Assembly (NCBI RefSeq): GCF_000143415.4
Contig: NW_003314283.1
Coordinates: forward strand, 1,478,330 to 1,542,329
DNA: 64,000 nt
Reading direction: 5' to 3'
Source: Selaginella moellendorffii
Taxonomy: Eukaryota > Plantae > Lycopodiophyta
Shown here: in pieces, positions 6,452 to 64,000 of the stretch
Position numbering within the stretch: position 1 is the first letter of the stretch
Layout of the letters: the number at the start of each line of letters is the position of its first letter
The notes under the pieces: model-generated
The model's input: only the letters and a program-made list of their open reading frames with translations
Told to the model about the DNA's origin: nothing
Databases searched by the model: none
Position numbers and translations under genes: made by a program

Positions 6452-6689
6452 ACGTTTGTGAGACATAAATCCCTAAGCCCTAAAGTGGAGCCGAAAGGGT
6501 GCCACATGGTAGTGGCCAAAGTAGAAGCTAAATGAGCATAACACGTTTGGACTAAAAGCTTCAACTTAGACGGTTGAGAGTGGGAGTGGAACTCCCAACG
6601 AAGTGCTTGAGAAACGAACACAAAGCAAGCAGTAAGTGAGTCTTTAGAAAAGGGACACAAAAGGACCAATACATGACATATGAAAGTGT

Positions 6690-7085
6690 TGAGATGGAAT
6701 CTGAGATAGAGTGTAATATAAACCCAAAACGGAGTTCGAGATGGAGTCCGAGAAGAAATTCGAAATGGACCCAAGATGGAGTCCGATATGGACCTGAGAT
6801 GAAGTCTAATATGGACCTGAGATGGACTTGAGATGGAGTCTGATATAGACCCGAGATGGAGTCTGAGATGGACCCAAGATGGAGTCCAAGATGGAGTTCG
6901 AGATGGATCTGAGATGGAACCGAGATGGAGTCCAAGGTCAAGTCTGAGATGGACTTGAGATAGAGTCTAAGGTTGAGGCTGAGAAAGAAACTGAGACCAA
7001 GACTAAGACTAAGACCGAGACTGAGATCGAGACCAAAACCAAAACTAAGACCGATTCTAAGTCCAAGTCCAAATTCAAGTTCAAG
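6690..7085 (+). repeat. Degenerate 12-bp (GAGATGGAGTCC / AAGATGGACCC) and 6-bp (GAGACC/AAGACT) minisatellite inside the LTR; also at 10720-11213, 23340-23735, 27450-27970, 2120-2275 and 18775-18925
   Basis: Periodicity is directly visible, and copy number varies between LTRs. Confidence 0.85.
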
Positions 7086-11213: not shown

Positions 11214-11313
11214 NNNNNNNNNNNNNNNNNNNNNNNNNNNNNNNNNNNNNNNNNNNNNNNNNNNNNNNNNNNNNNNNNNNNNNNNNNNNNNNNNNNNNNN
11301 NNNNNNNNNNNNN
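11214..11313. other. Assembly gap (100 N)
   Basis: Run of N. The matching unit-2 position has only 23 bp. Confidence 0.99.
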
Positions 11314-35289: not shown

Positions 35290-35349
35290 CAGAATCAAAA
35301 CCGTCTATCACATATTAGCCAGAATCAAAACCGTCTATCACATATTAGC
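35290..35349. repeat. Perfect 2x30-bp tandem duplication spanning the stop codon and start of the 3' UTR of ICS copy 3
   Basis: CAGAATCAAAACCGTCTATCACATATTAGC appears twice here and once in the other copies. Confidence 0.95.
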
Positions 35350-41500: not shown

Positions 41501-44500
41501 GGATTATACCAGACCCTCATTTCATAGTGCAACGGGCTTGGAGCTTTTCTCCAAATTCATGTGCACTACATTTGGTATCAAAGGGATTGTCTTAGCAATT
41601 CCTATCCAACTTTTGTCAGATTTTCTGACTCAAGTTGCATATGCAAAGACTTTCCTAGTAGATCCCAAGCGACCTGTGTAGGATTAGTTGGATTGCACCA
41701 TTCGGTAAGAACGTTGTATGCATGTTCAGTTACTGATAGAGGCATGTATGTAGCTAGTGAGATGGTAAAACGGAACCGTGTTGATGATGCTGAAACCTCT
41801 AGATGGGCGAATCAAGAGGAGGAAACTCCTGCTAGAGATGCTGTGGAAGAGGCTGAGGCCGAGTCAGAAGAGGAAGAGCCAGATGCTGTGGCATTGCAGC
41901 GTACGGCTCAGGAAGTTGAGATCGAGAATTTGCGAAGGGAGATTCACAAATTGAAGGAGAACAAGAAGAGGAAGAAAGAAGCTGAGGCAGCTAAACCAAT
42001 TAAGCCTAAGCAACCGGACTCCTCTTCGAGTTCTGAGGACAATGAAGTTCTGCAGCCGCCCCCGGTTGCATGAGTTTCAAAGTTCAAGCCTCCGAAACCA
42101 CCCAACTTTAGAGGCATGCGGGACTATCAAGTTTTGGAGGATTGGGTCTACAATATGGAAAACTATTTCATAGCGGCAGACGTAGATGATCGTACCAAAG
42201 TTGCGTGCGCACAATCTTTTCTCACTGATCATACCAAAACTTGGTGGCACCAGGTGTGTGCTGAAAAAGGGCAGATTAAAAGTTGGACCAAAATGCGGTC
42301 TCGTATCCATAAGGAATACTTGGTTTGAGACTTCATGCGGAGCTACAGCGATTAAAGCAGCGAGGGGACCTCATGCATTATGTTAATATGTTTGCTCAGA
42401 AGCATATTATGATTGCAAATATGAGTGACGAAGATACTCAGAGTTATTTTCTAAAGGGTTTAAATTCACTTTCTCATAATGAGATTTTGAAGTTTAAGTT
42501 GAAGACGTACCTAGAGTGTAAGGAGGCAGCATAGCAAGTTGCCTTTAGCCATTCACTCATAGAACAATATCAACAGTCGTATGCTGATACCTCAAACAAG
42601 AATAAGAATTCTGGGAATAAACAAGGTGATCGGAAATAAAGAGTGGAAGGTAGGTTCCGCTCTAGGGGCTCACAAGCAACGGTTAACAAAGGTGGTGGTG
42701 GTGGTTGGAGACCACCAGTAGCTTCTTCTGGTCCTAGGCCCACTGTTCCTCCTCCTAGTGGGTACAAGCAGCAGCAACTTGTAAAACCTGCTCCTAGCGG
42801 AACAGATAGTGTGGGTCATTGCTTCTATTGTGGAGAGTCAAGACATAGGTCCTTAGAATGTCCCAACAAGCATAAGACAAGGTCTCGTGTTAATGTCATG
42901 AGGGAAGACGGTGGTGGTGAAGCTAAAGGGGTTGACGAGTTGGTCAATGCAGACTATGAGGAAGGGGAGGTGAGTTACTTTTATTGCTTTCCTCAAGCTT
43001 TTTTCACAGTCAATGCAAACATTGATCCATTGATGTATTTGGTAGGCTTTGTCTGCGAACACCGAATCCGAGTGATGATTGACACGGGAGCTACGCACAG
43101 CATGATATCCGAAGACTTCGTTAAGTTGTTAGGATTGAATGTTGAGCAAATGTCGCCCATGCACTTCCAGTTTGTAAAAGGTGGGCAAGTAGCCAGAAAG
43201 TTTGCGAATGATATTCCAATAAAGATATCTAAATGGAAAGAAAGAGTGGACTTGGTAGTGTTGAAGATACCAAATTTTCAAATGGTGTTTAGTATGGACT
43301 TCTTCAACAAATATATAAAAGGGATTTATAGTGCTGGACAAAGTCATATCACATTGAAGTTCAAAGGACATCCTAATGTGTCCTTCCAATTGCAAAAGCG
43401 TTCCTCAAAGGATTGGGATGCAAAGTTCCTAATTGTGAAGGCCGCTCAAAAAACAGCTAAGAGGGGATGTTGGACCTTTTGGATTCAAGTGATGGAAGCT
43501 GAGGGTGTTGGTGACTCAATTTGAATTGGCGACGGGGTTGATTCTGTACCAAAGAAAATACTAGAGTTATTGGCAAGGAATCAAGATATCTTTCCAAAAG
43601 ATTTGCCACCAGGGCTACCTCCTAGCCATGAGGTTGATCATCAAATTGAGGTTATTTTGGGTTTTAAACCACCTACGAAGGCTCCATATCAATTGAACAT
43701 CAAGGAGATGGCTGAACTCAAGAAGAAATTCACAGAGCTTTTTGACAAAGGTCATATCCGACCAAACAAGTTACTTTATAGAGCGTTAGTCCTTTTTGTT
43801 ATGAAAAAGGATGGAACCATGAGGATGTGTATTGACTATCAGGCACTCAACAAGATCACAATTAAGAACAGTTATCCTTTGCCTCGTATTAATGACTTGT
43901 TTGACCAACTCTTAAAGGCTAAGTATTTTACGTGACTTGCTTTGCGGTCCGGGTATCATCAAATACGGGTGGCAGATTAGGATGTGGACAAGATAGCCTT
44001 TAAGACTCGGTACGGATCCTATGAGTTCCTTGTCATGCCGTTTGGGTTATGCAATGCTCCGGCAACGTTCACTACTATGATGGATAGAATTTTCAGAGAT
44101 TATTTGGATGCATTTGTTGTCCTATATATCGATGATGTTCTAGTCTTTAGTGAAACGTTGGAGGATCATTTGAAACACTTGGAGCTAGTGTTTCAGAAGT
44201 TGTGTGAACACAAACTGTATGCTAAGGAAAGTAAATGCACTTTTAGTCAATTGTGCATAAACTTTCTTGAACATATAGTTGGTGGTGGTGTGATTGAAGT
44301 CAATCCAAAGAAGGTGGAAGCGGTGAAGTCCTGGGAAGTCCCAACCACTGTATCAGATGTTCGTTCCTTTCTCGGTTTGGTGGGATACTATTGCAAGTTT
44401 GTCCGCAATTTTGCAAGAATTGCTCTTCCGTTGACTAAGTTGACAAAGAGTAGTATTCCGTTTCATTGGACACCAACTTGCTAGTGTGCTTTTATACGGT

Positions 44501-47500
44501 TGAAGGAAATGTTGACTACAGTTCTTGTTCTCAAGATCCCAGATCTTGATAAACCCTTCAAAGTGCATTGTGATGCGTTTGGATATGCTATTGGTGCTGT
44601 GTTACAACAAGATTGTGACAAAGCAGTTGGTGTTACTCTAAAGCGACATGGTTGTTCCGTTGTGTTTTATTTCAAAAAATTGGATGAAACCCAACGAAGA
44701 TGGCCAACGCATGAGAAAGAGATGTTTGCTATAGTGTCGGCCCTAGAACATTGGAGATACTACCTGGGTGGACATACCAAGGTTTATACAGATAGTAACA
44801 TACTAAGCTACTTTGCTACGCAGCCTAAGCTTATGCCGAAGCAGGCTCATTGGTAAGAGAAGCTTACTAGATATAATATTGAAATCATATATAAACCTAG
44901 TAAAGACAATATTGTTCCGGATGCGTTGAGTCGTCAAGCTCAATTCCGGGCAATATCGGCAATCAATTTGGACTGATTAGAGGACGTTTGGGCTTCATAT
45001 GGAAGTGATCCATTGGCAAAGGCAATCTTATGTCATGCAGGGTTGTTGAAGCAGAGCCCTAGTAACGAAGCAGCAAAAGTTGCTAGTCGCACTAATGCGA
45101 AGGTTCACTTCTCAGTTCGGGATGGGCTTATATTCTATAAATAAGAAAGATTGTATCTTCCCTTTAAGGATTTGCAGTAGTTATTTTTGTGGGAACATCA
45201 TGATGTTCCAGCAGCGGGACATGGTGGGAGGCAAAAGACTCTGGCTTCGTTGAAAAAGGGATTTTTTTGGTTTGGTATAGAAGGTGATATAGTGGATTAT
45301 GTCCGTTCCTGCCCTATATGCCAGCAATGTAAGCGCAGAACTGAGAAGTAGGCTGGAAAGTTGCAGTGCATTCTAGTACTAGCATGGCCATTTCAGAGTG
45401 TGACACTTGATTTCATCACTTGCTTGCCGAAGTCTAAGGGTTATGATACTTTGATGGTGGTTGTGGATCGGTTGTCAAAGATTGCACACTTCATTCCAAC
45501 TGTGGGAACCGTGAATGCAAAACAAGCAGCAAAGCTCTTTTTCCATGAAGTAGTGCGGGTTCGTGGTCTTCCCGAAAAGATGATCTCGGATAGGGATTCG
45601 AGGTTTACGGGGAAGTTTTGGGGCACACTGTTCCAGTGGTTCAGTACCAAGTTGAAGTTTAGTACGGCCTATCATCCTTAGACTGATGGGCAGACCAAAC
45701 GTGTGAATGTTCAAGTTGAGGATTATCTACAGTACTATGTTGTGGCAGACCAATGCGATTGGGTTGAGCATTTGGATACAACAGAAATTTGTTATAACAA
45801 CACATTTCACAACACTATTGGCTGTTCTCCATGGGAGATGCTGCAAGGAAATGCTTGCGGAGTGCCTCAACAGATTGTTGTCGAAACTAATGTCCGAAGT
45901 GTTGGTCTCGACCATTGAGACTTATGCAAAGCAGCTACGCCAAGGTTTGTCTAGAGCTACTGAGGCGATGGGCAAAGCTTAGGATAGGTATCAACATGAT
46001 AAGGATCAACATCGTCAAGATGTATCTTATCAAGTGGGAGATCAGGTATGGCTATCTTCCCGGAATCTCAGTGTTAAGAGATCTTTATCTTGGAAACTGC
46101 TACCAAGATATGTTGGACCCTATCGAGTGTTGAGACGAGTTAGTGTTGTATCTTATAAGTTGGATCTTCCAGATGAGTTCTCATGTACATAATGTGTTTC
46201 ATGTCAGTTTACTGGCACCATATTATGCTGCTGAGGAATGTTTTATGGAAATTCATCCTCCACCAACGATTATTGAGGGTGAACCTGAGTATGAGGCTGA
46301 AGCTATTTTGGACACTCATTGGCTTAAACATGCCAAATGTCGAGAGTATCTAGTTAAGTGGAAAGGTTATCCAACTTGTGAATCAACTTGGGAGCCTTTT
46401 AGGAATCTTACACATGCTCGTGAGCTTGTCATGGAGTATGAAAATTGTAATAAAGATTTGTTTTTGTAAATCTTGTAATAAATCTTGCAAATTAATAAAG
46501 TAATATATTTCTATAAATCAAAGTGTCGTTTCTCTCATTTATTAGTACTTGGGTCAGTTTGGCAGACTGATTTCAGCACTTCGGTGCATGGATGCAATCC
46601 ATAACCATGGGGATAACTATTATAGACTGATCACAAGTCCCCACCTCTCAATCAATGACTCACTTTTGAAAAGGGGCGTGGTCGTATAAACAACTTAATC
46701 TACCAGTTTATAATAGTTGTCTAAATCTTCCCGACAGGGTTGATTTCTTGCTCAGGGGAAGTTGGGCCTCTAGCCTTCTTCCTATGTCCCTGCGGGCAGG
46801 GATGTATCATTCCTTTGTAAGATGAGTGGTACTCAGAGCAGCAAGGGTGGCTAACTTTGTTAGTCATTTCCTTGTCGGTGACGGTCGGAGGGTGTCTGAG
46901 TCTTAACGTCTTTAGACGTAGAAGAGAGGTCGTTCCATAACTCATTTAAGTTGATGTGTTTCCCACATAGTGTGCTTTCCGTTAACTTTCAGAGTTGTTT
47001 CCTTGACGATTTGCTAAACTCGGGTATGCATCGACGAGGACGTCGATCTTCCCAAAGGGGGAGAGTGTTGCAAATGTGACTTCGGGTATCGAAAGATACT
47101 TGTCGGCTAGTCCTTACGGACTCTCTTTCTTTACTACCATGACGGCAGGAGGTCGGTACTGCTAGTTCCCATCATTGTTCCCTTTTGTCCAAGTGTTAGT
47201 AAATTGGGCTTAGCATCTGTACTTAGCCAGATGGGCATAAGGTAGGAACTCATATATGTTTCTAGCTAAGCATTCTCGGCCTGGCTTTTAGTTCTCTTTT
47301 GCTCTATCTTGCACTGGCTTGGCAAGAACCCTCGCATATTGAAATTTGTCCCTCAATATCGCAAGATGATAGCTTACCGTATCTGCCAAACACCTTCGCT
47401 ATCACACCCTTTGTGTTAGTCTCATTTTAGTCCCAAATATTATTTATGGAAAGTGTCTAAATTTGCTCATTTGGCATGTCTATGGAATGTAAAGGTTGAT

Positions 47501-48648
47501 TTAAATACAATGGTGTTTGTCCTGTGTCCAAATTCGCAATTTAAGGCCATTCCATTGGAGCTTGGGCTTAGACCCAAGCCCGATGCAGAACAAGGAGCTA
47601 TACAACCTAGCAGGAGCCAAACTAATATCTCAAGTAGTCAGACATGCGTTCTAACCACTATCTCTACTATATATTTGGAACCCCCCACAGCCCCCCACCC
47701 TGAGGAACACATGCTTTGGGCTTTCACCCCAACCCGCCCCCTTAGTACCAGGAGTTAGTCTCTGGGACAAGCTCGAAACTTACTAAATCGCTGCTCTAGT
47801 CGGTAGGGTACCCTCCTCTTCGCGTTAAGCCATCGGTATGCCAAAATTGTGCCAGACTTCGTCTGACACCATTTTCCATGCAAGTGCTAGATACGGGGAA
47901 CTAGTGCTCATGGGATTGTACTGGACCCTTATTTCGTAGTGCAATAGGCTTGGAGTTTTGCTCCAAATTCAGGTGCACTATAATTATTCATCGCTTAAGG
48001 AGTTTTATGATTAATGTTAATGCTTTTTCTTGAGCTCCTCTTCCTTTTAACTCTCTTCTCATAGTTTTGGCGAGCCTGTTATTCCAATATTTATGGATTT
48101 TTTGGACAAGGATTCAATATTATTAGTGATTGTTATAATTAATGTTCAGTGTCCATAAGGTGCGAAGCTAGATTTACTTTCTTTTGACAAGGTTTGTGAG
48201 GCTCAAAAGATTGAGCTGTGGATTTGAAAACTTTACAATAGGTTTGAGAAATCTTACATCACTTACTAATGACTTGTCATATCAGTATTTACATTCTCAA
48301 TATTGCCTTAAAAATTACCTTTATTTTGTAAGGACAGATCCTGATGATCATTTATGGCTGGTGGTGCCTTCAATCATTATTCCACACTTTCTCCATACCT
48401 ACCATGATTCTCCTATTCTAGGTGGGCATATAGAACATCGTTGTGTGATTGAGAAGATGCATAGGTTTTTCTATTAGTTAAAAATGTGATGTGATATTTC
48501 TAGTATAAGCGTAGTTGTATTTGGTGCTAAACTCATAATACTACCCTTCGTGCTACAAAAGGACAATTATAGTCAATTGCAGTTTCCTGTCCATTTGAGG
48601 TGGTGGCATTTAATTTGATAGGGCCTTTTCCATAGTAGACTGTTGGCA
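38563..48648 (+). mobile_element. Diverged paralog of the degenerate Gypsy remnant, split by the chromovirus (38563-40650 and 47988-48648)
   Basis: Reverse-complement homolog of ~3785-6451 with many substitutions. The halves rejoin at the ATTAT site. Confidence 0.85.
40651..47982 (+). mobile_element. Full-length but inactivated Ty3/Gypsy chromovirus (LTRs 40651-41570 and 47066-47982)
   Basis: Perfect TSD ATTAT (40646-40650 and 47983-47987), PBS TGGTATCA at 41573, PPT AAAGGGGGAGAG at 47054-47065. Domains: Gag with CFYCGESRHRSLEC knuckle, protease IDTGATHS, RT YIDD, RNase H, integrase, and chromodomain EYLVKWKGYPTCESTWEP. Multiple in-frame stops. Confidence 0.95.
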
Positions 48649-51318
48649 TGAAGAGGTGTGAAAACTCCTCTTCGCTGGAAATCTATTGTTAGTAAGAAAA
48701 CAAAAGAGAAAAGGGCTCGATCTCCAAGGGCAGAGAAGAAGCACGAGTAAAAGAATGCTGTCTATTGATAAGAAAAACAATGGAATAGAGATAGGGATCC
48801 ACAATTCAAATTCCCCTCTTTGAAAGGCTAGCGGTTCTAACTGCTAGTATATACTATATGTTGTGCATGATTTAATCTATGGCTCCAATGTAGCCCTGGG
48901 TTCAAAGTCGGAGTCCCCTGAACCTTGGTTTTTGGTTGATACACTTTGATCCCCTGACAGAACTAGACACTGTCCTCGGTGCGAACGTAGTCAGCCTCGA
49001 TTGCTTAATCCAACGGTAGCTTGGGACTTATAGATTTTTGCTGCTGTTTAGAAATTGTGGTTTCAGGGTGTTGGTTGGTTCAGGTTGGAAACTTGCTGAG
49101 GTGGTGATGCTGAATATGTCAATGTGATATGGTCAAAGCTTGTTGAGGTTGACAATCTCAATGAAGTCTTCAGCTAGTGTGCTGACTTTGGCTGTGCCAT
49201 TGGGGTATAGTTCAATGATTTTGAAAGGTCCTTGCCAGTTGGTGTGGAGTTTTCGGCCAAGTTTGCCGATGGGTCCTTGGTACCAGAGAACATGATCGTC
49301 GATGCTGTAATTGGGAATGTTATGCCAGGATGCTTGTCGGTCGTGCCGAGCTTTTCTTTGTTTTTGGATGGCATGAAGTGTCCAGAGGGCGTTGAGTCAG
49401 AGTTCGTTGAGATGTTCGAGTTGCTGAAGCCTTTCTCGAACTGCATGTCGGGTGTCGAGATTATACTTGACGGTGACTCGCATGCTTGGGACGATGAATT
49501 CAATTGGCGTGATGGCTTCTGTTCCGAATGCCAGTTTGAATGGCATCATGTCAGTGGTGACTTTATACGCAGTGCGATAGGCCCAAAGTATGTCCAGAAG
49601 TTTGTCGTCCCAGTCTTTGCCGGAATCGTTGATGACTTTTTTGAGGATGGTCTTTAGTGTTTTGTTCGTTGCTTCTGCTTGACCGTTGCTTTGAGGATAG
49701 TATGGTGTTGACATTTTGTGTCGGATTTTGAACTCGGTGGCGAGATGTTTGATTGTTTGGTTGATGAAGTGGGTACCTCTGTCAGTGACGAGTTTGAGTG
49801 GTATGCCGAAACGAGTGATGATATTTTCGTAGATAAAGGTTGCTGTTGCTTTCGCTGTGGCATGTCAGAGAGGTATTGCTTCGGCCTGTAATCAGTGGCG
49901 ATGATGATGTATTGATTTCATCGACGGGTGCTGACTTGGGGTCTGACGAAGTCGAGTCCCCATTTCTGAAATGGTGCCATTGGGAATGTTGGGTTGAGTT
50001 GTTGAGTCTAAGTTTTCGGTGGTAATCGGTGTCTTTGACATGTGTTGCAGCATTTGCAGAATTCTTCAGTGTCATGCTAGAGTGTCGGCCACCAGAGGCC
50101 GGCTTGAAGAATCTTCCGAGTTGTGGTGTCAGCGGCAAAGTGTCCACCAGAAGGTCCATCGTGAGCTTCCTTGATGATTTGAGTTGTGTGTGGCTGCTTG
50201 ATGCATCGGCGAAGAATGTTGTCAATTCCGAGTTTGTAGAGAGTGCCTCCGATAACCGAGTATCGTCGGGTTTTAGCAACAAAAGTCTTCTTTTGGTCGG
50301 ACGTAGTGTACTGATCTGGAACTTTTGCTGAGTTCAGGTAACTGAAGACGTCGTCGAGCCAGGTTGCCAGTATTGAAACTCGGAATAGGTTTGAGTCGGG
50401 TAAGTCATCGGTAAGTCTTTCGGGTTTGTCGCCGGTGGTGATCCGGCTGAGATAATCTGCTTGCTTGTGATTTTTGCCGGGTTTGTGGACGATCTCGAAG
50501 TTGTATTCTTGTAGTAAAAGGAACCATCTTGATATTCGACCAGATAGTATTGGCTTGTTGATGAGGTAAAGGAGTGCCTTGTGGTCGACGAAAATTATGA
50601 CTTTGGTTGACAGTATGTAGTGGTGGAACTTCTGAAGTGAGTAGATCATGCCAAGAGCTTCTTTCTCAGTGGTGGTGTAATTTCGTTCAGCTGGGTTGAG
50701 TAGTCGGCTGGCGTAGTAGATCAGTTGATCTCGGTTGTCGTGTTGAATTTGGCTCAGAATTGCACCAGTGGCGACGTTGGAAGTGTCGACATGAATGTGG
50801 AACTCTTGTGTCCAGTCGGGCTTGGCAAGGATCGGTGCTGTTGTTAGTTTGAGTCGGAGATTGTCGAATGCTTGTTGCTGTTCGGACATCCATGTCCATT
50901 GGGCATCTTGTTTCAGTCCATCGGTGAGTGGTTTGGCAATGTGAGCGTACTTGTGGATGAATCGTCGGTGATATCCGACTTTGCCGAGGAAGCGCCGAAG
51001 TTCTTTCTGGTTCTTCGGCGGTTCGAGTTTGGAGATGACGTTGACTTTGTCCTTGTCGATAAGAATGCCGTCTTTGCAGACAACGTGGCCGAGAAGTACT
51101 CCAGATTTGACAAAGAAAGTGCATTTATCGGGGTTGAGTGCTATGTTGTTCTCCTCGCACTTGTTGAGGCATTTCTCCAGGCATTCAAGATGTTGATCTT
51201 CCGAGCTGAAAACGTTGAAGTCGTTCATGAAGACTCTCATGAAGTCGGTGAGGTAGTCTTGAAAAGTGTTGGTGACAAGCCTTTGGAAGGTGAATGGGGC
51301 GTTGCAGAGGGAAACCAC
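48649..51318 (-). mobile_element. 5'-truncated Ty3/Gypsy element (RT C-terminal half, RNase H, integrase, probable 3' LTR ~48649-48943)
   Basis: 413-aa ORF CNAPFTFQR...RNYTTTEKEAL...GGHF, integrase STPYYPQSNGQAE, and a purine tract followed by TGT...TCA on the minus strand. Confidence 0.85.
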
Positions 51319-54300
51319 TTGGTTGGCAGGGAAATCTCTCTCACTCCAAGGGTCCTAGGGAACTGGTCCCATCTCAAGACAGCTCTTGGGTGCATTAGAA
51401 GTTTGAGTGGACCTGGCGTGTGGACATAGGCCATGTTCCAAAGATACCTCATTGTTGGATCTACTAGAGCTTGTAGCCACATTCATGAATCTCTATGAAG
51501 GCACAGCACTCCTGCCCCAAGCAGTGCAGCTCGCAGGAGGCAGCGCTCCAAAGCTGGAGCCCACAATGAGATGAGTTGCAGCTTGCAGCAAGTCTGCTCC
51601 AGCTCATGCTGGATTTGCCATTGTATGCAACACAATTGCCTAAGATCTCAGCAACAACACCACTCACATTGAGAATCCTTGCACCCTTATCCAGGCCGTG
51701 CTGAGCTCCTCATCCAGAGTTTCTGAGGCAGCATATAGTATGAGACCATGTAAGCCTTGCAAGGATCCATGCCTCACAAGTGCAGCCTCCCAATGTGTGT
51801 CCAAGCCACTGACATTCCTATACTGCATCGCAGAAGGACAAAAGTTTTTCTCCAACAGCATTGAAAGTGTTGTCTGTGGCATGAGGTTGAGCATACTGGG
51901 GCCCCAAGTCCTCAATGCAAACGAGGCCACTCCTCATGTCCCTGGGAAGCCCTATTTCACTTTTGATTCCACACTGAATGCTTCACATACATCTTGATGA
52001 CACAAAATGTCTGCTATTTCCACATGGGTGTTTGGCACAGGCCTTGTATGCTTTCAAGGTATATTCATAATAATTTAATATAAGCCACACAAACAAAACC
52101 ATGTGAATGTTTATGAATAAAATTGTTAATCATGGAGGAGGTACATGATATACGGCCAAGAAAAAGAATGGACAGGTCAGCCATTGGCAGCAGTATGACT
52201 TTACCTAATATGCAGTCGTTCGAATTTTGGCTAGCGTGGTCTGAGTCGTATTACGATGAATGCAAGGGTGAAGCACTGGTATGATGGAGGCAATGGTGGC
52301 AAAGCACGGGCCTACAGTACATATCTTGCTCTGATAGTTTGCGCTGGAACTTACACGTGAACTATGTAAGTCAACAAAGAAGAAAACAAATACCAGGGAA
52401 GCAAGTTCCATAAAAAGAAGAGAATCTGATGTGAATCCAAACTTGCCATAGAAAGTCAGGCCATCTAATTCTGACAAGAACTATAGTTACATTTTATATA
52501 TCAGGCGGTTGAGACTTTGCATAAAGAAAGAAGGTAGCTTCTTGCTGCTTTCCTGCTCTTAAAACACGTGTTTAAAATGATGCATAAATACAGTATAACG
52601 CAAAACAAGTAGCAAACATTCTTTGACCACAAATTCCACTTGACGTATGACATTGTCTTGCAAAAACCTTTGTTTCAAAAAGAAGGCTTGTCAAACACAT
52701 CCTAAAGTTCTCAAGTTGCCAAAGACCACGTCTCGTCCTTTTGGAGACAGGATGGCCTACGCTGGAGCGAAGCATGTAACGTGTTGTGCAGCTTGAGCCG
52801 CTTACAAAATTGGACTGAAAAATACACAGCGTAAAACTTAGGCGGTGAATAGTGTCGGTATTGAGGAATTTTCGATCCAGGGCTTCTTCTTCACAACATT
52901 GATCCAGAGAAGGAGCAGAAGTAAAAGATTGTCAAAGTTAGTAGTGACTCCTATACTGCTGTAATGGTATTCATATATTTGTAGTAACAGAGGAAGCACT
53001 ATACAGTCAACAATATGTTCTCTATTTCTTCTGTTTGTACGGTTCATTTTTAGAATCCCAGATGGAGACAAAGAAGTGAGAGAAAAAATGGTATTTACTC
53101 TTTTTAAAATTTACAAAAAAATGGGCCTGAGGGAATTTACCCAGAATCAAAACCGTCTATCACATATTAGCAGACACTGACCTGCCTGTAGTGGCTGGGT
53201 CTGCCGTCTGGATATGTCACCAGCGTCATTCTGTAGCCTTGACGCTTGAGAAGCAACTGTTGACTCAAGTCGAGCTGCTCACAGGCCATTTCTCTGGCCT
53301 GCATACTCGAACCTCGGATGACTTTGGAGTGCAGCAGCATGAACTTGCCATCTGCCAGCTCCACCACCGCGTTGTGCCATGGTGTTGGGATGTGGAAGTT
53401 CTTCTCCTCGGAAGAACGCTGCGCTGCCACTAGAGAGGAATGGATGATGTTGATGCCATACTTGGGACCTCTGTTTGGATGCGGGTGGATGGAAATGCGC
53501 AGCTGCAAAGGGAAGAGCCACTCCACCATGGCCGAGTATGCACGGTTCCTGAGGATCATGAGGAAGGCAACCTGGCTGCACAGCTTCTTCTTGGCCGACT
53601 TTGACGGGAGATTCTTGCAGCTCTTGTGTTCGTACAAGTCCTCGAGCATGAACCTGGAGAAGCCACGATATAGATTGCGTGTCTCCGGCTCCTCCTTGAT
53701 CTCCTTGGTGACGGTGGACTCGTCACATCCAAACAAGCACATGAGAGCTCGCCTGGCATTCTCTGCATTGGCGGTGAGCTCAGTCGCAACGGGATGCTCC
53801 ACGGTGGTGTTGGAGATAAGCTTTGCAATGTCTTTGTCACTGTGGTTGTCCAGCAGAAACTCATCCAGGCGAAAGAAATTGACAAGGCCGGGATACAGAT
53901 TGTGTGCCATCTCCCAAAACATCTCGCCGTAAGAATCCACAGCAGCGTCGTCCGAGCCGACGAGATCAGAGAAGACATGGCCATCCGAGGCGACGTTGTA
54001 GTGCACGCCTGGAGCATACACGGCCTTGATGAGATCCGCAACAATCTTCATGGAATGGATGGCCAGCTCCTCGGCCTTGTCCGGGCACTTTCCCAGAGTC
54101 TTGTCGGGATTGCACGACTTGACTGGAAATGCGGGCAAGACGAACTCGAGTGGAATGTTTCTTGCGACGTGGTACCTCACCTTGTCCGCAAACCTCTGCT
54201 TGCCCCCACTTGTGAACCACTGGTCGTGCTTTGGGAAGTGGATGTAATTCTTCTCGATGATGTCCACAACTTGGGAGGTGATGTCGTCCACCTCTTGAGG

Positions 54301-54886
54301 TGTGTGCGAGCTGAAGGGCTCCAGAAGGCAATCTCTGGTCATGACGCCGTTGTCCAGCAGCAGAGAGGCCAGATAGCTCATGCTCTCGCTGTCCTCCTCC
54401 TGGAGATTGGGATCCTGGATGAAAACCACGCCCTCGAACCCGTTCCCAATGTATCTCTCGTAGACGGTGGCTGTCCACTCCTGGTCAGCTGCTGCTCCAA
54501 GCATGGAAATGGTGTACTTGTTCATATCTGGAGCAACTGAGCGTGTGGCCTGCTTTGCCGCCTCTAAATCTTCCGCCTTGTCGCTCGCGACCATGGAGGA
54601 GAACAAGAAATCGCACTTGGCTGCTAGTACTGGGACATGCCTAGACGCAGATTGTGAGACGAAGCCAATCTCACCACTCTCTCTGTGGATGTACAGGAAT
54701 GCAATCTTGTCCTTTGGATATGAACTTGCCATGGGTGTTATGAAGAAAAAGAGAAAATCTCAAATTTCAGGCTAGAGGATGGAAGATTGTAGACTGGGAT
54801 CGATGAATTGTCTGGGTTTCTCTGGTTGGGCTTTTATACCAGGAAGCCGCCCGACGCGCTTGACTGGAAAATTATCAAACGTGGGC
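51310..54886 (-). repeat. Inverted copy of ICS plus its downstream flank
   Basis: Reverse complement of ~13990-17570. Near-identical from ~51805 to ~54840 and visibly more diverged at 51310-51805. Confidence 0.9.
53167..54732 (-). CDS. DIT1-like: Isocyanide synthase Dit1/PvcA family, copy 4, divergent from the ABCG gene
   Basis: Protein identical to the other copies. Upstream homology to copies 1-3 ends at ~54886. Confidence 0.93.
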   Translation of the reverse strand: MASSYPKDKIAFLYIHRESGEIGFVSQSASRHVPVLAAKCDFLFSSMVASDKAEDLEAAKQATRSVAPDMNKYTISMLGAAADQEWTATVYERYIGNGFEGVVFIQDPNLQEEDSESMSYLASLLLDNGVMTRDCLLEPFSSHTPQEVDDITSQVVDIIEKNYIHFPKHDQWFTSGGKQRFADKVRYHVARNIPLEFVLPAFPVKSCNPDKTLGKCPDKAEELAIHSMKIVADLIKAVYAPGVHYNVASDGHVFSDLVGSDDAAVDSYGEMFWEMAHNLYPGLVNFFRLDEFLLDNHSDKDIAKLISNTTVEHPVATELTANAENARRALMCLFGCDESTVTKEIKEEPETRNLYRGFSRFMLEDLYEHKSCKNLPSKSAKKKLCSQVAFLMILRNRAYSAMVEWLFPLQLRISIHPHPNRGPKYGINIIHSSLVAAQRSSEEKNFHIPTPWHNAVVELADGKFMLLHSKVIRGSSMQAREMACEQLDLSQQLLLKRQGYRMTLVTYPDGRPSHYRQVSVC

Positions 54887-55186
54887 GATTGCCTTTGGGA
54901 AAAAAACGTGATTAGATTTTAACTGATATCATCGGAAAGGAAGTTTGATATGTAATTTCCTCTCGTGACCTTCCTACCAAGTTCCGCTTGACAACCACGG
55001 AAAACAAGATCTTTGATATCGTCAACATTTTCTATACATTTTTCTACAGTGTCGCCTACCAGCGTTGATTGTCGGGTCAAAGCTTTTCTCTTTGGCGGTA
55101 CTGTGATAGTAAATGGGTGAGAGCATAAGAACCTCTTCTTTGTGAGCTCTGCGTTTTGTGGAAAGTGGAAACACCATTGATCGACC
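54733..55186. promoter_or_regulatory. Shared divergent (bidirectional) promoter region between ICS copy 4 and ABCG
   Basis: 454 bp between the two ATGs. TATAAAA on the minus strand at 54832-54838, W-boxes TTGACT (54860-54865) and GGTCAA (55075-55080), CGCG box ACGCGC (54854-54859), T/G-box AACGTG (54878-54883). Function is inferred from the motifs. Confidence 0.6.
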
Positions 55187-58100
55187 ATGGAGGCTGCAAT
55201 GACGGGTGACCATTTTTCCGAGAGTGGATCGCTTCGTGTCGACGACGAGGAGGCTCTCAAATGGGTTGCGTTGGAAAAGCTTCCCACGCACAATCGTCTC
55301 AGGACAGCCCTCCTCCAGAATCTCGGGGAGGATGGACAGGAAATTGCTTATCAGGATGTCAAGAAGCTCGGATTCCAAGAGAAGAGGGGCCTCATCGAAA
55401 AGCTGCTGGGCGTCCAGGAATCAGAGGACGAGATCTTCGTCAAGAGGCTCCGCGAAAGAATCGATAGGCAAGTTCCAAGTTCTTACAACTTGTCAATCTC
55501 TTTGGAAGGGTTTTTTTCTTAGTTCTTTAGTTCTTTGTTTGCAGGGTTGGAGTCGAGCTTCCCAAAATCGAAGTCCGGTTTGAGGGTCTCACTGTTGAGG
55601 CTCAAACTCATGTGGGAAAGAGAGCTCTTCCCACGCTCTACAACTTTGTTGTCAATGGGGTGGAGAGAATTCTCGGCTTGCTTCATCTCATTTCATCAAA
55701 CAAGCATCCACTCAAAGTCTTGCGCAATATCAGTGGCATCATCAAGCCCTCCAGGTTTGTAGTGCTTCCTTCAATTCGCAAGAACTCCAATGAACTAGAA
55801 CTCATCTTACTTTCTTTCATTGAGACAGGATGACTTTGCTCTTGGGTCCTCCCAGTGCGGGCAAAACTACACTCCTTCTTGCACTCGCTGGGAAACTAGA
55901 CAAGTCACTTAAGGCAAGAACAAGCTCTCAGAAGTTCTCATCCTCGAAAAAATATGAAGAATTTTCTCTACAGTTTTTATTTATCTTCTTTTTTCTTTTC
56001 ATACAGGTTTCGGGTCGCATCACCTACAATGGCTCTGATATGACAGAGTTTGTGCCGCAAAGAACTTCTGCCTACATTAGCCAGCATGACTTGCATATGG
56101 GAGAACTGACCGTGAGAGAGACCTTTGATTTTTCTTCCCGGTGCCAAGGTGTTGGAAGCAGACATGGTAATATAATCTTCATCGCTATTGCATCACAGCT
56201 ACTGACTATCGCCAGCTCTTTGTTCTCTAAAACAGAAATGGTTATGGAGCTGGCAAGAAGAGAAAAGAATGCCAAAATCAAACCCGACCTTGCTATTGAT
56301 GCTTACATGAAGGCAAGGAACTTAACAAAAATGAATCAACTTTCTTATGTTTTCTGTGGAAACAGGCTTCTGCTATCAAAGGTCAGGCAACCACCATTGT
56401 CACAGATTACATCTTGAAGGTATGAGTGCCATTTTCTTAGCTAGTACCTTAGTTTAATATCATTGATTTTCTTTCTTTTCTTTCTTTTCGTCCTGTAGAT
56501 CCTAGGATTGGATATCTGCGCTGATACAGTTATTGGAGATGCAATGCGCAGAGGTATCTCCGGTGGACAAAAGAAGCGTGTTACTACTGGTTAGTCCTAA
56601 AACAATTGGATTGCAGAATTGCTTACAAGTTCTTTCCTAAACTTTCAGGGGAGATGCTGGTCGGGCCAGCCAAATCTCTTTTTATGGACGAGATTTCAAC
56701 TGGTCTTGACACCTCCACCACGTACCAAATCGTGAAAAGCTTGAGGCAGTCGGTTCATGTCTTGGATGCTACTGTGATTGTGTCTCTGCTACAACCAGCC
56801 CCGGAAACTTACGAGCTCTTCGACGACTTGATCCTCCTGGCCGAAGGCCAGATTGTTTATCAGGGCCCGCGGGATCTTGTGCTCGATTTCTTCGACTCCC
56901 AGGGATTCAAGTGTCCTGCAAGGAAAGGAGTCGCGGATTTCCTACAAGAAGTCACGTCGAGAAAAGACCAAGAGCAGTACTGGGCTGACGAGGAGAAGCC
57001 TTACGAATACGTATCCGTAGAGAAATTCTCAAGCGCATTCCGGCAGTTTCATGTTGGTCAGAACTTAGCCGAGGAGTTTTCGACGCCTTTTGACACGACT
57101 AAATCTCATCCAGCGGCACTTGTGACGAAGAAATACGGCCTCGGCAAGTGGGACATTTTCAAAGCAGTCCTGGCGAGGCAGATGCTCCTGATGAAAAGGG
57201 ACTCTTTTGTCTACGTCTTCAAGTGTACACAGGTACGTAGATGTTGATAATCTCGAGTCACTAAAGCAGAATTCGACTTTGCAGCTCTTTATCATGGCCG
57301 CGATCACGATGACAGTTTTCTTACGGACAAATATTCATGCCAACAACGTAAATGATGCGACACTGTACATGGGAGCATTGTTTTTTGGTCTGGCTACTAT
57401 CATGTTCAGTGGTTTCGCTGAGGTCTCCATGACAATCCAACGCCTCCCAGTGTTTTTCAAGCAAAGGGACCAAAAGCTATTTCCTGCCTGGGCATACTCA
57501 ATCTCTACAATAATCACAAGGCTTCCACTCTCGCTGCTGGAATCAGCAATCTGGGTGTTCATGACATACTACGTTATCGGCTTCGCTCCCAGCGCTTCAA
57601 GGTTTGTAAAACTTCTTACAAGGCTTGTTGATATCTCTAAGACATTTGTTAACTTTTTGACAGACTCTTTCGCCAGTTCTTGCTTCTGTTCTTGGTCCAT
57701 CAGATGGCAGGAGGACTTTTCCGATTTATCGCTGCACTCTCACAGAAAATCGTCATAGCAAACACGTTTGGCTCGTTCGCGCTCTTGGTCATCTTTGCGC
57801 TGGGTGGCTTTGTTCTCTCAAGAGGTAAAAGACTTGTTTCTCGCTGTTTATAGCATCTAATTTTCTTCCTTTTCATTTGGTTCCAGATAGCATACATCCT
57901 TGGTGGATCTGGGGCTATTGGTCGTCTCCAATGATGTATGGGCAAAACGCACTTGCTGTCAATGAGTTTAGTGCAACAAGGTGGCAGCGGGTGAGTCTTA
58001 TTTAAAAACTAGCTCAGAAGTTTGATCACCTTCTCTCTTTCCTGTAGATGGATGGGAATGCCACGATTGCGAGGAACTTCTTACAGTCCCGAGGACTCTT

Positions 58101-60841
58101 TGCTGATGGATACTGGTATTGGATTGGAGCTGGTGCTCAGCTTGGTTACATTATCTTTTTCAATGTTGGCTTCACGTTGGCTTTGACCTATCTCCGCGGT
58201 AAGTGATCACTCTTAAAGCTTTTCTCACAAACTTACGAAGTGTGCTCTTCTTATCTCTGGCAGCTCCAAGTAAATCCAATCAAGCAATAGCATCTGTGGA
58301 AACGACCAAAACGTACAAAAACCAGTTCAAAGCTTCTGATAGAGGTAAATTTACTATTTTCACGACCACGAGCGAGATCTGATTTCCATACCTTAATGCA
58401 GCTAACGAGATCGAGCTGAGCCAACCAGCTGAAAAGAAGAAGGGAATGGTTCTTCCTTTCAAGCCTCTGGCGTTGTCGTTCAGCAATGTCAACTATTACG
58501 TAGACATGCCTCCGGTTGGTTTGCAAAACTGAGCTCTTTCTCATGCGAAGTTCTCACATTGCTCATTTGATCACTTCCAGGAGATGCTAAAACAAGGCGT
58601 CACAGAGAGTAGACTCCAGCTTCTTCACGACATAAGCAGCAGCTTCAGGCCTGGAGTTCTCACGGCTCTGATGGGCGTAAGTGGAGCTGGAAAAACTACA
58701 CTCATGGATGTTTTGGCTGGACGTAAAACTGGTGGCCACATCGAGGGTGAGATCTCCATCTCGGGATATCCAAAGAGGCAGGAAACTTTCACCAGAGTCT
58801 CTGGCTATTGCGAGCAAAACGATATCCACTCGCCAAATGTGACTGTCTACGAATCGCTCGTCTTTTCTGCTTGGCTTCGACTGTCAGAGGATGTATCAAA
58901 AGAGACCAGACTGGTGAGTGCTTTTTCACAGGTTTCAGAGGTTTCAGAGGTTTCTCACTCTGTCGTTATTTCTTGTTTTCGTTGGCTTTCAAGTTTCTCA
59001 CGATTCTTGGTTGTTTTCTTGTGTAGATGTTTGTAGAGGAGATCATGGAGCTTGTGGAGCTCACTCCTATCCGCGATGCTATCGTTGGTCGCCCTGGAAT
59101 GGACGGGCTCTCCACGGAGCAGCGAAAGAGACTGACTGTAGCAGTGGAACTCGTTGCAAATCCCTCCATCATTTTTATGGACGAGCCAACTTCGGGTCTG
59201 GACGCTCGGGCTGCCGCGATTGTCATGAGAACAGTACGCAATACCGTCAACACGGGACGCACCGTCGTTTGTACCATTCACCAGCCGAGCATTGACATCT
59301 TCGAATCCTTTGATGAGGTAAGATCTTCTGATCAACAGAGAGTTTCTCTTTTCCCACTTTTGTGCTGATTGTTATGTTTGTGGTGTTTAGCTGCTGCTCA
59401 TGCAACGAGGTGGCCGAGTGATTTACTCTGGTCCTCTTGGAAAACATTCGAGCAGACTCATCGAATACTTCGAAGTAAGTTTCATATAGTTTTTCTCCAA
59501 CACTGCATTGTTAACGAGAGACTTTGTTTGCACAGGCTGTTCCTGGGGTTCCTCGTATCCACGACGGCTACAATCCAGCAACTTGGATGCTCGAGGTGAC
59601 GAATCCGGATGTAGAATACCGGCTCAATGTGAACTACACTGAGATCTACAAGTCGTCAACTCTCTACCAGTGAGTTTTAATATTCTTTTGCTGAGAGTTT
59701 TGGGACTGATCAATGCATTACCAGCCACAACCAAGCTGTGATTGCTGATCTACGCACACCTCCTCCAGGCTCGGTCGACTTGTCTTTTCCTTCGGAATTT
59801 CCTCTCTCGTTTGGGGGACAAGTAATGGCCTGCTTGTGGAAGCAGCATCGATCTTACTGGAAGAATCCTTACTATGTTTTGGGACGCCTGTTCTTCACGC
59901 TCACTGCTGCTCTCATGTTTGGCACCATGTTTTGGGACGTTGGCTCAAAGAGGTGGGCAAGCTTTAATCCTGATCTTTTCACAAAGTTTATGTTTACTTT
60001 GCAGGGAAAGGCAGCAAGACCTCTTTAACCTCATGGGATCCATGTATTCTGCCGTGTATTTTATTGGAGTTTGCAACGCAGCGGGGATTCAACCAGTTGT
60101 TTCAGTAGAGCGAGCTGTATACTATCGAGAAAAAGCTGCTGGAATGTATTCAGCTCTCCCCTATGCCTTTGCTCAGGTAAAGTTACATAGCGTTGGCTAT
60201 GGTGGCAAGAATCTTACTTGAAAGCGTCCTTTTCAGGTGATCATCGAGCTATTCTACGTTTTGGTTCAGGCAGTTTCATACGCGGGCATTGTTTACTCAA
60301 TGATGAAACTCGAGTGGACGGCCGCAAAGTTTTTGTGGTTCGTTTTCTTCTCCTACTTCTCCTTCCTCTTTTTCACGCTCTACGGGATGATGGCCGTGGC
60401 AATCACGCCCAACGAGAGGGTGGCGGCAATTTCTTCCACTGGATTCTACGCGCTGTGGAACCTCTTCTCGGGCTTCCTCATCCCTCGACCGGTGCGTATA
60501 TGATCAATCTTTTTTCGCGTTTGCCCGATCGAGGAGACTCATTTTTTTTCTCTTGCACGATGCAGAGCATGCCAATATGGTGGAGATGGTGCTACTGGCT
60601 TTCGCCACCCGCGTGGACTCTGTATGGAATCATCACTTCTCAGCTCGGGGATATCACTGCGCCACTGAGGCTCACAGACGAGACGAGGCTGCCAGTGCCA
60701 GTGCAAGAGTTTTTGAGAGACTACTTCGGCTACGAGCGCGATTTCCTGGGTGTGGTCGCAGGCGTGCATGTTGCGCTCGTCGTTACAATCGCGATCGTCT
60801 TCGGCCTGTGCATCAAGTTCTTGAACTTCCAGAGACGATAA
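55187..60841 (+). CDS. ABCG/PDR: Full-size plant ABC transporter, subfamily G (PDR type), ~22 exons
   Basis: N-terminal [19 protein letters not shown]1 has [24 protein letters not shown] and [13 protein letters not shown]2 has GVSGAGKT and [12 protein letters not shown]. Two TMD blocks; ends LNFQRR*. About 21 short introns traced by eye with no evident disruption. Confidence 0.95.
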
Positions 60842-61049
60842 AGCATCGCCAACACATTTTTGCTCCAGTTTTGATAAATGTAAATATTAAACAGGGATGT
60901 AATCCTACTCTGATTAATTAATATTTAATTCCAATGGTCAATGTTTGGTGCTCCCAATCCGGATCAGAACCGCAGAGCAATGGAAGCACGTAATCATATA
61001 ACAGGTCAGAGAAATCTACTGTAATGACATAACGCTTTTGTGCTTGCAG

Positions 61050-61477
61050 GGCTTGTTCCCAGCGCAGCTGCGAAATTGTCTACACTCTTTTACGTTCGGA
61101 GCATTTCCCTCCGGAGCACAACAATGGGCGTTACATGATCCGAGAGGCGAGCAGCACCCTGATGCAGTATGGCCAAGCAGCTTTACAAAGCGTGCTCGGA
61201 GAAGACGGAACAAAAAAGTATCCAGAAGAGTTTCACGCGCGATCATCGTCACAGGCGGTGCAGCTACAGGTTCTTTCATTCTCTTCGTTTAAGTTTTCCC
61301 TTGACGCGCTCCCTTTTGCTCCAGGCTTACTGTGTAGGTGAAGGAAACGACCGAGTTTCATCCTGCTTTTCAATTATAGCTGCCGAGCCAGAGCTGTGGC
61401 CCCGCACTCACGCAGCCTCATATCGCCGGTTGTGGGATTTGGTGAGGCAGATTGCAGCTATCGACAAGGAGACATGA
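61050..61477 (+). CDS. Possible small spliced gene or gene fragment of unknown function
   Basis: GC-richer open exon ACSQRSCEIV...AVQLQ, then a GT..AG intron (~61270-61324), then AYCVGEG...DKET*. No start or family recognised. Confidence 0.25.
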
Positions 61478-62451
61478 ACTTGTCCTGGAGAGCTCTTGGA
61501 AGAAGCCAGCAAGCTTGAATACCGTTGTTAAGTTACTCTTGGTTGAGAGTCTATTGTTGTGCATAGCATCATTCTTGAGCCTTTTTGTTGTTATGAGCCA
61601 TAGATAAAACTCGTCCTGTGCTTTCCATTATATTGTCACAGTTCCTTGTTTGGAAAAACTACAAGTCATCAAGGGACATTGTCTTTCTTCCACTCTAGAT
61701 TCTCATACCATTCATGGATGGATGGTGGAGCTCCTTCGAAGCCCAGGATTTCTTGTTCTTGTCAAACATTTCAGCTTGGAACTTCCATTCCTTTTTCCCG
61801 CCTCCAACATCCGATTTGATTTCGGTCCGGGCATTGTTTTCCGCTGGAGTGGTGGTCGTTTGCGGGGCCGCCACAGCTGCTTGGTACTTTCTGATAGGCC
61901 GTGATCATTGATTTGATGCCTAGCTCGAATGAATCCAGTCCCTCGGGCAGTTTTACCGGGCAGGAATCCATGGCAGCCACACTTCCCTCGCCGATGGCAC
62001 GGTTTCAACTTCAATGTTGCCTAACGGGTGTAGCTTGATGGTAGAGGCAGAAATCGTCTTTTTGTTCACCACCATAAACTCTCTTCCTTCCCCTAGGTCC
62101 TTGGTGAGTCGTTGAAGGGTATCTACTTTCCAATATCATCCAGAAGTTCCTTACCTATGTTTTTTCTAGAAAATCATCCACAACCTATGTAACTGTGTCA
62201 ATTAAAGCCCACAAAGAAGTGATAAGAGCCTGGTCCACTTTGAGTGAGCAATTTATAGCTTGTTCATGAATGATCGATCATACCTTGAGCACTACCTGAA
62301 ACGTACTTTGACAATCGTTTTCATGTTAATCAAGCCAGAGTTTGTAGCACCATCTACAACTAAAGAGAACAATGTAGGCATCTTTTCCTAAAAATTCTAC
62401 AGAAAAACAGAGAATGCCGACTGCCAGCTTCCCCGATCGTCATCATCCTGG

Positions 62452-63223
62452 TCATCCCCATGTTGTCAAATAAGCAAAGATGCATCTTACGGTGTGGGAG
62501 CCATGGCAAGGCAATAAGTGGTACTTGTCATGAGCTACTTTTTGTATGCTGGCGATGTCCGTGCAGGAATTCATATGCTCCACGAAGCCCTCGAGATCAA
62601 TCTCAAAAGCAGTTCCCTGCCTCTCCAGAACAAAATCTTCCAGAGCAGGATGCTTGAACACCTCTTCAGCGGGGAAAGTCATCTTGGTTGGGCTTGCTGA
62701 AGCTCCTGATCGTGTCCTTGCCCCATGACCGGCACCCCACAAAAAACTTGTAGCTCCCCTTTCGAGCCATCTCGTCGTACTCGAGAGAAAACCCAAACAC
62801 CAGATTCACAGACTCAAGCGCGAGAGAGTTCTTCTCCAAGATTGCATCATCCTCGCTGGTGAACGCAACTTCTCCCACCACGATCGGCTCCACAAACCCG
62901 TCGCTGCTCTTGGCTCCAAAATCCACCTTCTTGATCACGCCGGAGGAAAGGATCAAATGAGGGAACCCAAAACATACCCTCCTCATGCCGGTCTCGGGTA
63001 TGAGGGTGGCCGCCATCCACATCCGAGCTTGGCCATGGAAATGAGTGTTGTCCCCGCACACCAACAAGCTGCCATTCTCGTATTGCACGCCATAACTCGT
63101 GATCTCTTCGTAGTTTAGTAGCGCCTTGGCTTCCTCCCCGGACACGCCATCGCACACAAGAAACGGCCCTTGCCTCAAGCGTCTCCGGCGAGTAACATCA
63201 TCCAGCACGAGCTTAGCCTTCTT
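62452..63223 (-). pseudogene. Uma2/DUF820-like PD-(D/E)XK-fold (Crinkler C-terminal-like) gene with a probable 1-nt frameshift
   Basis: The pattern H...KKVD...PIVVGEVAFTSE resembles the H...PD...P.lVvEV..S motif. ORF 62666-63208 stops just after a C4 run, and the neighbouring frame continues AEEVFKHPALEDFVLERQGTAFEIDL. There is a possible splice acceptor at ~63224. Confidence 0.5.
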
Positions 63224-63772
63224 CTACAAGAGACTTTACACGCCTAGACTTTAAATCGCTACTCATTTATAAATTTAACCCTAGTCATCATGCACACATT
63301 TAGAGATGGTTGATATTAACAATGGTTCTCCTGAGCCCTGTTTATAAAGGCATGATCACGTACAAATAAACTATGTAACTACTACAAATACTTTCTAGGT
63401 GCAGAATTTCACGCGCTTAACCGGAATGAAGCCACTGATCTTAGAAAGTGTTATCTCGGAAACAAGATAACGTACCTCGGCGTGGGAATGTTTTGACTAT
63501 TGAAACGCGGACCACGATTTAAACAATACAAAGTCATGAAAGGAAGCCTCGTATGAAACTTTTTGCGATGAGCTTCCTCGTTTGACAGCTGACAAAGAGA
63601 AAAACTCTGCTTCAACGCATAACATTTTACCAGTGTATTATAATTGTCAAGTAGAGCCTACCAACTTTGATCTCGCGCTCAAGAGACTTGTATTGTAAAA
63701 TCAGAGAAGACTGGAGCATAAAAACCCGAGCATTTGCTTCCCTTGGTATCTAAACACATTCATCGATCGATC

Positions 63773-64000
63773 ATGGAGGTGGCAATGTCGGGTGATTGTT
63801 TTTCCGAGAGTGGATCGATTCGTTTCGATGATGAAGAGGCTCTCAAGTGGGTTGCGTTGGAAAAGCTTCCAACCCACAATCGTCTCAGGACAGCACTCCT
63901 CCAAAATCTTGGGGAGAATGGGGGGCAGCAAATTACTTATCAGGATGTGAAGAAGCTCGGATCACAAGAAAAGAGGGGCCTCATCCAGAAGCTGCTGGGC
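63773..64000 (+). CDS. ABCG/PDR: Second PDR/ABCG paralog, first exon, runs off the window
   Basis: [47 protein letters not shown]... closely parallels the gene at 55187. Confidence 0.9.
   Translation, partial: MEVAMSGDCFSESGSIRFDDEEALKWVALEKLPTHNRLRTALLQNLGENGGQQITYQDVKKLGSQEKRGLIQKLLG

Follow-up and report, generated by a model that had tools for sequence, protein, structure and literature searches.

A fungus-type isocyanide synthase gene stands head-to-head with a plant PDR transporter gene in Selaginella moellendorffii, probably as an incidental neighbour

Introduction

Yeast DIT1 is paired with the cytochrome P450 gene DIT2, and its exporter is Dtr1, a member of the major facilitator superfamily (MFS). 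In plants, transporters of the PDR type within the ABCG family are known to export defence metabolites (e.g. PMC8359288). Here we analyse a 64,000-nucleotide stretch of Selaginella moellendorffii DNA (hereafter the window), part of the v1 scaffold GL377587.1, in which the last of four isocyanide synthase (ICS) genes, ICS copy 4, stands head-to-head with a full-size PDR/ABCG gene, PDR1; the locus fetched from the public genome for this region (L014) is 100% identical to window positions 43167-64000 (20.8 kb).

Fungal ICS clusters contain MFS transporters in ~60% and P450s in 35% of cases, together with zinc-finger regulators and isocyanide hydratases (Nickles et al. 2023, PMC10153163). An earlier, sequence-only reading of the window had taken ICS copy 4, PDR1 and the tandem paralogue PDR2 for a candidate synthesis-plus-export module, partly on the grounds that fungal ICS clusters often include transporters. 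This is correct for transporters as such, but ABC transporters are unmentioned in the main text of that survey.

The locus resembles the yeast DIT1-DIT2/Dtr1 system and the fungal ICS clusters in having a DIT1_PvcA backbone enzyme, a divergent neighbour and a membrane exporter nearby. Unlike in yeast, however, the divergent partner is a transporter rather than the P450 Dit2, and this transporter is a plant ABCG/PDR rather than an MFS protein. Unlike the fungal clusters, the ICS gene belongs to a multi-copy array, and the window holds ICS copies, retroelement fragments, two PDR genes and one unknown gene only: as the sequence-only reading had noted, no tailoring enzyme (P450 Dit2, iron/2-oxoglutarate (Fe/2OG) dioxygenase PvcB/IsnB) is found in it, nor is an MFS transporter, an isocyanide hydratase or a transcription factor. 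The bacterial PvcA-PvcB and IsnA-IsnB systems share a homologous ICS domain (3e59, 9dhm), but differ in their Fe/2OG dioxygenase partner and in lacking the extra N-terminal ~184 residues that the Selaginella enzyme has in common with fungal Dit1. As in plant biosynthetic gene clusters, a gene for a specialised-metabolism enzyme adjoins a transporter gene; unlike those clusters, which comprise several co-expressed non-homologous enzymes, no second enzyme class accompanies ICS anywhere in the 64 kb, and the association does not recur at the paralogous loci compared. PDR1, for its part, is much like the described plant PDRs (Arabidopsis ABCG36/PEN3, Nicotiana PDR1), with a reverse (NBD-TMD)x2 arrangement of nucleotide-binding (NBD) and transmembrane (TMD) domains, a PDR_assoc domain, many short introns and a tandem paralogue.

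Results

ICS copy 4 and PDR1 adjoin at an ordinary distance and in an arrangement found once among the ICS places compared

Our analysis indicates that ICS copy 4 and PDR1 are probably an incidental, and not a brand-new, neighbourhood at the end of an ICS array. The two start codons are divergent and separated by 454 bases (54733-55186), as the sequence-only reading had placed them. In an independent DNA run of 2024, one 547-nt contig bridges the junction (54824-55370) with one mismatch and at a depth of 298, as compared to ~260 over the PDR body, corresponding to single-copy sequence; the join is therefore real and not an assembly artefact. The v1 assembly was rejected as an independent confirmation of the junction, since the window itself derives from its scaffold GL377587.1. 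In the other loci fetched from this genome, divergent gene pairs (n=13) lie 45-1281 bp apart with a median of 391, and a gap of 454 bp is thus ordinary for this compact genome.

Eleven further ICS places, on seven scaffolds of this genome (L001-L009, L012/L013, L015), were compared for the genes called up to 10 kb away. None of the eleven has an ABC-transporter family member in that range; their neighbours are kinases, PPR proteins, BAHD transferases, 2OG oxygenases, jacalin, other ICS genes and others. BLAST of eight of these loci (L001-L008) against the window likewise returned no match to the PDR region. On GL377593.1, no PDR gene is present in 1.650-1.672, 1.740-1.793 and 1.839-1.861 Mb (L001, L002, L009, L006, L015). 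Of the five identical full ICS copies in the sub-array to which it belongs, copy 4 alone touches a PDR gene, the other four having no adjacent pump. Given the many array edges, one neighbour encoding a transporter, P450, dioxygenase or transferase would be expected by chance, and any such neighbour would be flagged.

ICS and PDR1 are separate transcription units

RNA contigs cover the ICS gene from ~53023 to 54784 and PDR1 from 55143 onward, and RNA depth is zero at 54900-55099 in three RNA-type runs. These separate extents, with no signal in between, show that ICS and PDR1 are separate transcription units whose core promoters lie ~300 bp apart. A TATA box (TATAAAAG, 54831-54838) is found at -106 from the ICS copy 4 start codon, within the 154 bp common to all close copies. 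The sequence immediately upstream of PDR1 recurs neither elsewhere in the window nor in any fetched locus. Contigs over the PDR gene skip its introns, and the signal is thus RNA rather than contaminating DNA.

Both gene types are transcribed, and often in the same samples. At least nine RNA-type runs from five studies contain 0.59-0.67 of the sampled words of the stretch, whilst the maximum share that could be reached, counted from the gene model, is ~0.50 for the PDR exons alone and ~0.27 for ICS alone; a share above that of either gene indicates that ICS and PDR are commonly expressed in the same bulk samples. This is co-occurrence of the two gene types and not co-regulation. The ICS:PDR depth ratio ranges from 0.4 to 1.1 across three runs, contig depth itself being uninformative. 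In DNA run X1, summed contig depth over ICS (53100-54700) is ~10-30x that over PDR1, an excess in keeping with a large ICS family in the genome whose copies are >=95% identical.

Since at most one base sets the coding regions apart, no ICS read can be traced to copy 4, and positions diagnostic of this copy lie in the leader and promoter (54744-54753, 54811 and 54820-54821). Position 54643, which is A in copies 2-4 and G in copy 1, was tried as a copy marker and proved useless: all runs, including the DNA run, show only G. The only RNA contig that reaches the part of the leader in which the copies differ comes from run X3 and extends to 54784 (-52); it carries two indels (54743, 54753) that define the leader of copies 1-3, not the copy 4 form. 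ICS contigs from run X5 bear variants of the copies on the other scaffold, for example 54526 A>C, which gives D69E as in the paralogue P0001. The ICS contig from run X2 ends at the very base (54743) at which the leader types part, perhaps because the RNA contains a second type of leader.

Copy 4 joins near-identical to diverged sequence

In self-BLAST, the segment of copy 4 that runs from 51340 in the 3' flank to 54853 is 98.4-99.6% identical to the other copies. At 54853/54854, copy 4 has a 14-bp deletion relative to them, followed by a further 33 matching bp (54854-54886). Identity to copies 2 and 3 is thus at least 98.8% up to -154 and then falls to ~65-70%, remaining collinear, with indels, to about -285. 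The alignment score of this remnant (54887-55015) is 60, as compared to 24±7 for shuffled sequences (0 of 500 reach it), and 0 of 68 unrelated window segments attain this score. The corresponding upstream region is common to all other close copies, including those on GL377593.1, at >90% identity. The leader states of copy 4 match the GL377593.1 copies and not copies 1-3.

A fresh segmental duplication placing copy 4 beside the PDR gene, with a breakpoint at -121, was considered and rejected in view of the 33-bp further match and the diverged collinear homology to about -285. The pattern would fit a gene-conversion mosaic better, the switch between proximal and upstream sequence most likely being the edge of a conversion tract. 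On the simplest reading of the alignments, copy 4 would be an old terminal copy whose body has been homogenised with its neighbours by gene conversion, in which case it stood next to PDR1 before copies 1-3 were recently amplified.

The ICS is of fungal type and PDR1 of plant type

The pairing of a foreign enzyme with a native exporter, as proposed in the sequence-only reading, is borne out at the level of gene identity. The ICS protein matches Pfam DIT1_PvcA (PF05141) with E=1.4e-82 over residues 185-475, and this catalytic domain is homologous to solved isonitrile synthases (9dhm/9dh4, E~3e-28; PvcA 3e59, E=1e-25). Its best relatives outside Selaginella are Dit1-like proteins of the chytrids Blyttiomyces, Cladochytrium and Zopfochytrium (44-45% identity), followed by those of other fungi; judged by these matches, the enzyme is of a foreign, fungus-like type, with chytrids as its nearest non-plant relatives. 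In one close chytrid relative (P0009, Cladochytrium tenue, 881 aa), a single gene model contains DIT1_PvcA (213-505) and, after it, MFS_1 (550-876); the model is a fusion of synthase and exporter or else a merger of two adjacent genes.

Public gene models of the ICS copies begin at Met131 (391 aa), whilst RNA contigs span the full 521-aa open reading frame (ORF) and ~50 nt of leader, and the public models are probably truncated. An exact look-up of the 521-aa protein in the public models gave no match, which follows from their start at Met131. A literature search combining Selaginella and isocyanide synthase found no paper.

The PDR1 model, built by protein-guided prediction and refined at splice sites with RNA contigs, is complete, with no stop or frameshift. 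All 14 introns within the stretch that was compared with RNA are confirmed by spliced contigs in three RNA-type runs; 11 are GT-AG and 3 GC-AG. The GC-AG introns are three of the first five (55468-55544, 55914-56006 and 56313-56365), each seen in spliced contigs from the three runs. Exon by exon, the Pfam domains follow the order ABC_trans_N (weak), ABC_tran, ABC2_membrane, PDR_assoc, ABC_tran, ABC2_membrane, the reverse topology (NBD-TMD-NBD-TMD) of PDR pumps. The plant-specific PDR_assoc domain (PF08370) lies in exon 12, after TMD1 (E=9.5e-22, 76.9 bits against a cut-off of 24.9). ABC_trans_N (PF14510) scores 20.9 bits on exon 2 alone, below its cut-off of 25.4, the domain being spread over two exons; it is also weak in the public annotation, which has a 1436-aa PDR at this locus. 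The model is 50-51% identical end to end to full-length PDR representatives, and its closest solved structures are yeast Pdr5 (7p03) and Candida Cdr1 (9iuk). On this domain make-up, PDR1 is classed as a native plant-type PDR pump.

The second ABCG gene that the sequence-only reading had seen to start at 63773 is indeed a tandem paralogue, PDR2: its first 75 residues are 85% identical to those of PDR1, and exon 1 is 86.7% identical at the DNA level. The upstream regions of the two pump genes do not align. With exon 1 87% identical and the promoters unalignable, the pump duplication is old and unrelated to the ICS amplification. A literature search for PDR gene counts in Selaginella returned none.

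The ICS array and other features of the window

The four ICS ORFs in the window encode one and the same 521-aa protein. According to the public record, a fifth identical full copy lies directly before the window and a truncated sixth copy exists, and further ICS genes are found ~100 kb upstream on GL377587.1 (L005), so that the ICS-rich region of this scaffold extends over ~170 kb. Copies 3 and 4 are separated by Ty3-type retroelement fragments (within 41561-51318), and low-complexity repeat ORFs recur at 6561-7103, 23210-23752 and 27429-27989. The coordinates of all features are collected in Table 1.

Table 1. Coordinates of features in the 64,000-nucleotide window
Feature	Position	Strand	Description
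ICS copy 1	14158-15723	+	Protein identical to copy 4; no transporter adjacent
ICS copy 2	30807-32372	+	Identical protein; in tandem with copy 1 as a 16.65-kb repeat
ICS copy 3	35345-36910	-	Identical protein; inverted relative to copies 1-2
Ty3-type protease	42643-43524		Retroelement fragment between ICS copies 3 and 4
Ty3-type reverse transcriptase (RT)	43984-44484		Retroelement fragment between ICS copies 3 and 4
Ty3-type RT/RNase H/integrase ORF	50077-51318	-	Retroelement fragment abutting the ICS copy 4 3' flank
ICS copy 4 3' flank	51340-53166	-	94-98% identity to 3' flanks of other copies; ends at Ty3-type fragment (self-BLAST)
ICS copy 4	53167-54732	-	Intronless 521-aa DIT1/PvcA-type isocyanide synthase, uninterrupted ORF
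ICS leader and proximal promoter	54733-54886	-	Common to other copies (sequence, alignment, self-BLAST)
Diverged remnant of ICS-family upstream region	54887-55015	-	Collinear with upstream region of copies 1-3
PDR1 proximal promoter and 5' untranslated region	55016-55186	+	RNA contig begins at 55143; unique sequence
PDR1	55187-60841	+	Full-size ABCG/PDR gene; 22 exons, 1413 aa, 21 introns of 52-113 bp
360-aa gene	~61636-63291	-	Public gene call between PDR1 and PDR2; includes 180-aa ORF 62666-63208
PDR2 (start)	63773-64000	+	Tandem paralogue of PDR1; public annotation 1425 aa

The gene between the two pumps, which the sequence-only reading had overlooked, is not a tailoring enzyme. Neither its public call nor a Pfam search with its ORFs (62666-63208 and 62452-62796) gave a Pfam family, and a homologue search with the 180-aa ORF recovered no homologue of similar length, only the ORF itself. 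An Atlas feature search (score 0.94) linked it to a 'restriction endonuclease domain' and to Uma2-like proteins of oomycetes and fungi, which we treat as a lead only.

Several neighbours of other ICS genes were recorded. A BAHD acyltransferase gene (PF02458) lies 2-3 kb upstream of two ICS paralogues on different scaffolds (P0003 and P0006; L004:6346-8027 and L008:5858-7239), so that a BAHD neighbour recurs across ICS paralogues and the PDR neighbour does not. Two DIOX_N/2OG-FeII_Oxy genes are found 3.7 and 8.2 kb downstream of the paralogue P0005 (L007:15331-16510 and 19821-20999; GL377601.1), 2OG-FeII_Oxy being the partner class used by the bacterial PvcA/IsnA enzymes. A Glyco_transf_22 fragment (L003:11806-12781) stands directly downstream of P0002 and is joined to an ICS domain in model P0021; it is probably the scar of a duplication.

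Discussion

We propose that a large array of fungus-derived Dit1-type ICS genes, amplified locally, would have ICS copy 4 as its final member and would end against an older tandem pair of ordinary plant PDR/ABCG genes. The two neighbours would work independently, ICS from its own TATA box at -106 with a short leader and PDR1 from its own 5' end ~300 bp away. Copy 4 itself may be old, gene conversion being the most likely reason why its body, from the 3' flank through the coding region to the proximal promoter, is still near-identical to the neighbouring copies. Its adjacency to PDR1 would have no functional meaning. Several observations weigh against this interpretation. Contigs of both gene types, ICS and PDR, occur in the same RNA-type runs; the age of the copy 4 flank suggests that the adjacency to PDR1 has lasted some time, which is a property of any neighbouring gene pair and not evidence of coupling; and fungi do use dedicated transporters to export Dit1-type products, albeit ones of a different class (MFS, not ABCG). 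Contigs, moreover, drop minor variants, and a silent copy 4 is not thereby demonstrated; more generally, absence of evidence is not evidence of absence.

Were the two genes a functional module, as suggested in the sequence-only reading, copy 4 and PDR1 might share control elements in the ~300 bp between their core promoters, with PDR1 exporting, or protecting against, an isonitrile or N-formyl amino acid made by the ICS. Their head-to-head position, the integrity of both genes and their transcription in the same samples speak for such a pair, as do the age of the copy 4 flank, which makes the adjacency no fresh accident, the coupling of synthase and transporter in fungal relatives (P0009; PMC10153163) and the export of defence metabolites by plant PDRs. 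We nevertheless consider it unlikely, and none of our tests lends it support: the eleven other ICS places show no such pair, an adjacent pump is missing from four of the five identical copies, the spacing is ordinary, ICS has a TATA promoter of its own and the one leader-bearing RNA contig is of copy 1-3 type. The absence of a tailoring enzyme from the window, the MFS rather than ABCG identity of the fungal partners and a depth ratio that varies across three runs, uninformative as contig depth is, argue in the same direction. The fuller version, in which a horizontally acquired ICS and a native PDR are joined through a shared divergent control region into a minimal two-gene unit for synthesis and export (or self-protection) of an isonitrile or N-formyl-tyrosine metabolite, with an ABCG pump replacing the fungal MFS, is slightly less likely again.

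Copy 4 could also be weakly expressed or silent, its far-upstream regulatory DNA having been lost or replaced, with the observed ICS mRNA coming from other copies. Upstream of -154 it has no match to the region that is >90% conserved among all other close copies, the X3 contig has the leader of copies 1-3 and the X5 contigs bear the variants (54526 A>C, D69E) of copies on the other scaffold; against this, the ORF is intact and identical to its neighbours, the end of the X2 contig may mark a branch from a second leader type, and contigs cannot show absence, so that we judge a silent copy improbable. An erroneous assembly join between a repeated ICS unit and the PDR locus could be envisaged, since the ICS units are near-identical repeats, the window contains a run of Ns (11214-11313) and the sole assembly compared is the window's own source. 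The independent DNA contig across the junction, at single-copy depth and with its single mismatch, and the copy-4-specific variants that flank the junction make an artefact of this kind very improbable indeed. Our preferred interpretation therefore remains that of an incidental neighbourhood at the array end.

Were the pair functional after all, it would illustrate how a foreign enzyme comes to be connected to the export machinery of a plant, and would point to the transporter of an undescribed plant isonitrile or formamide metabolite. ICS and PDR genes are both already annotated in the public S. moellendorffii genome; our analysis adds an RNA-supported model of PDR1, a view of copy 4 as a probable homogenised old copy at the end of the array, and a set of copy-specific markers for co-expression. 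The main biological interest lies in the ICS family itself: expressed, amplified and of fungal type, in a plant.

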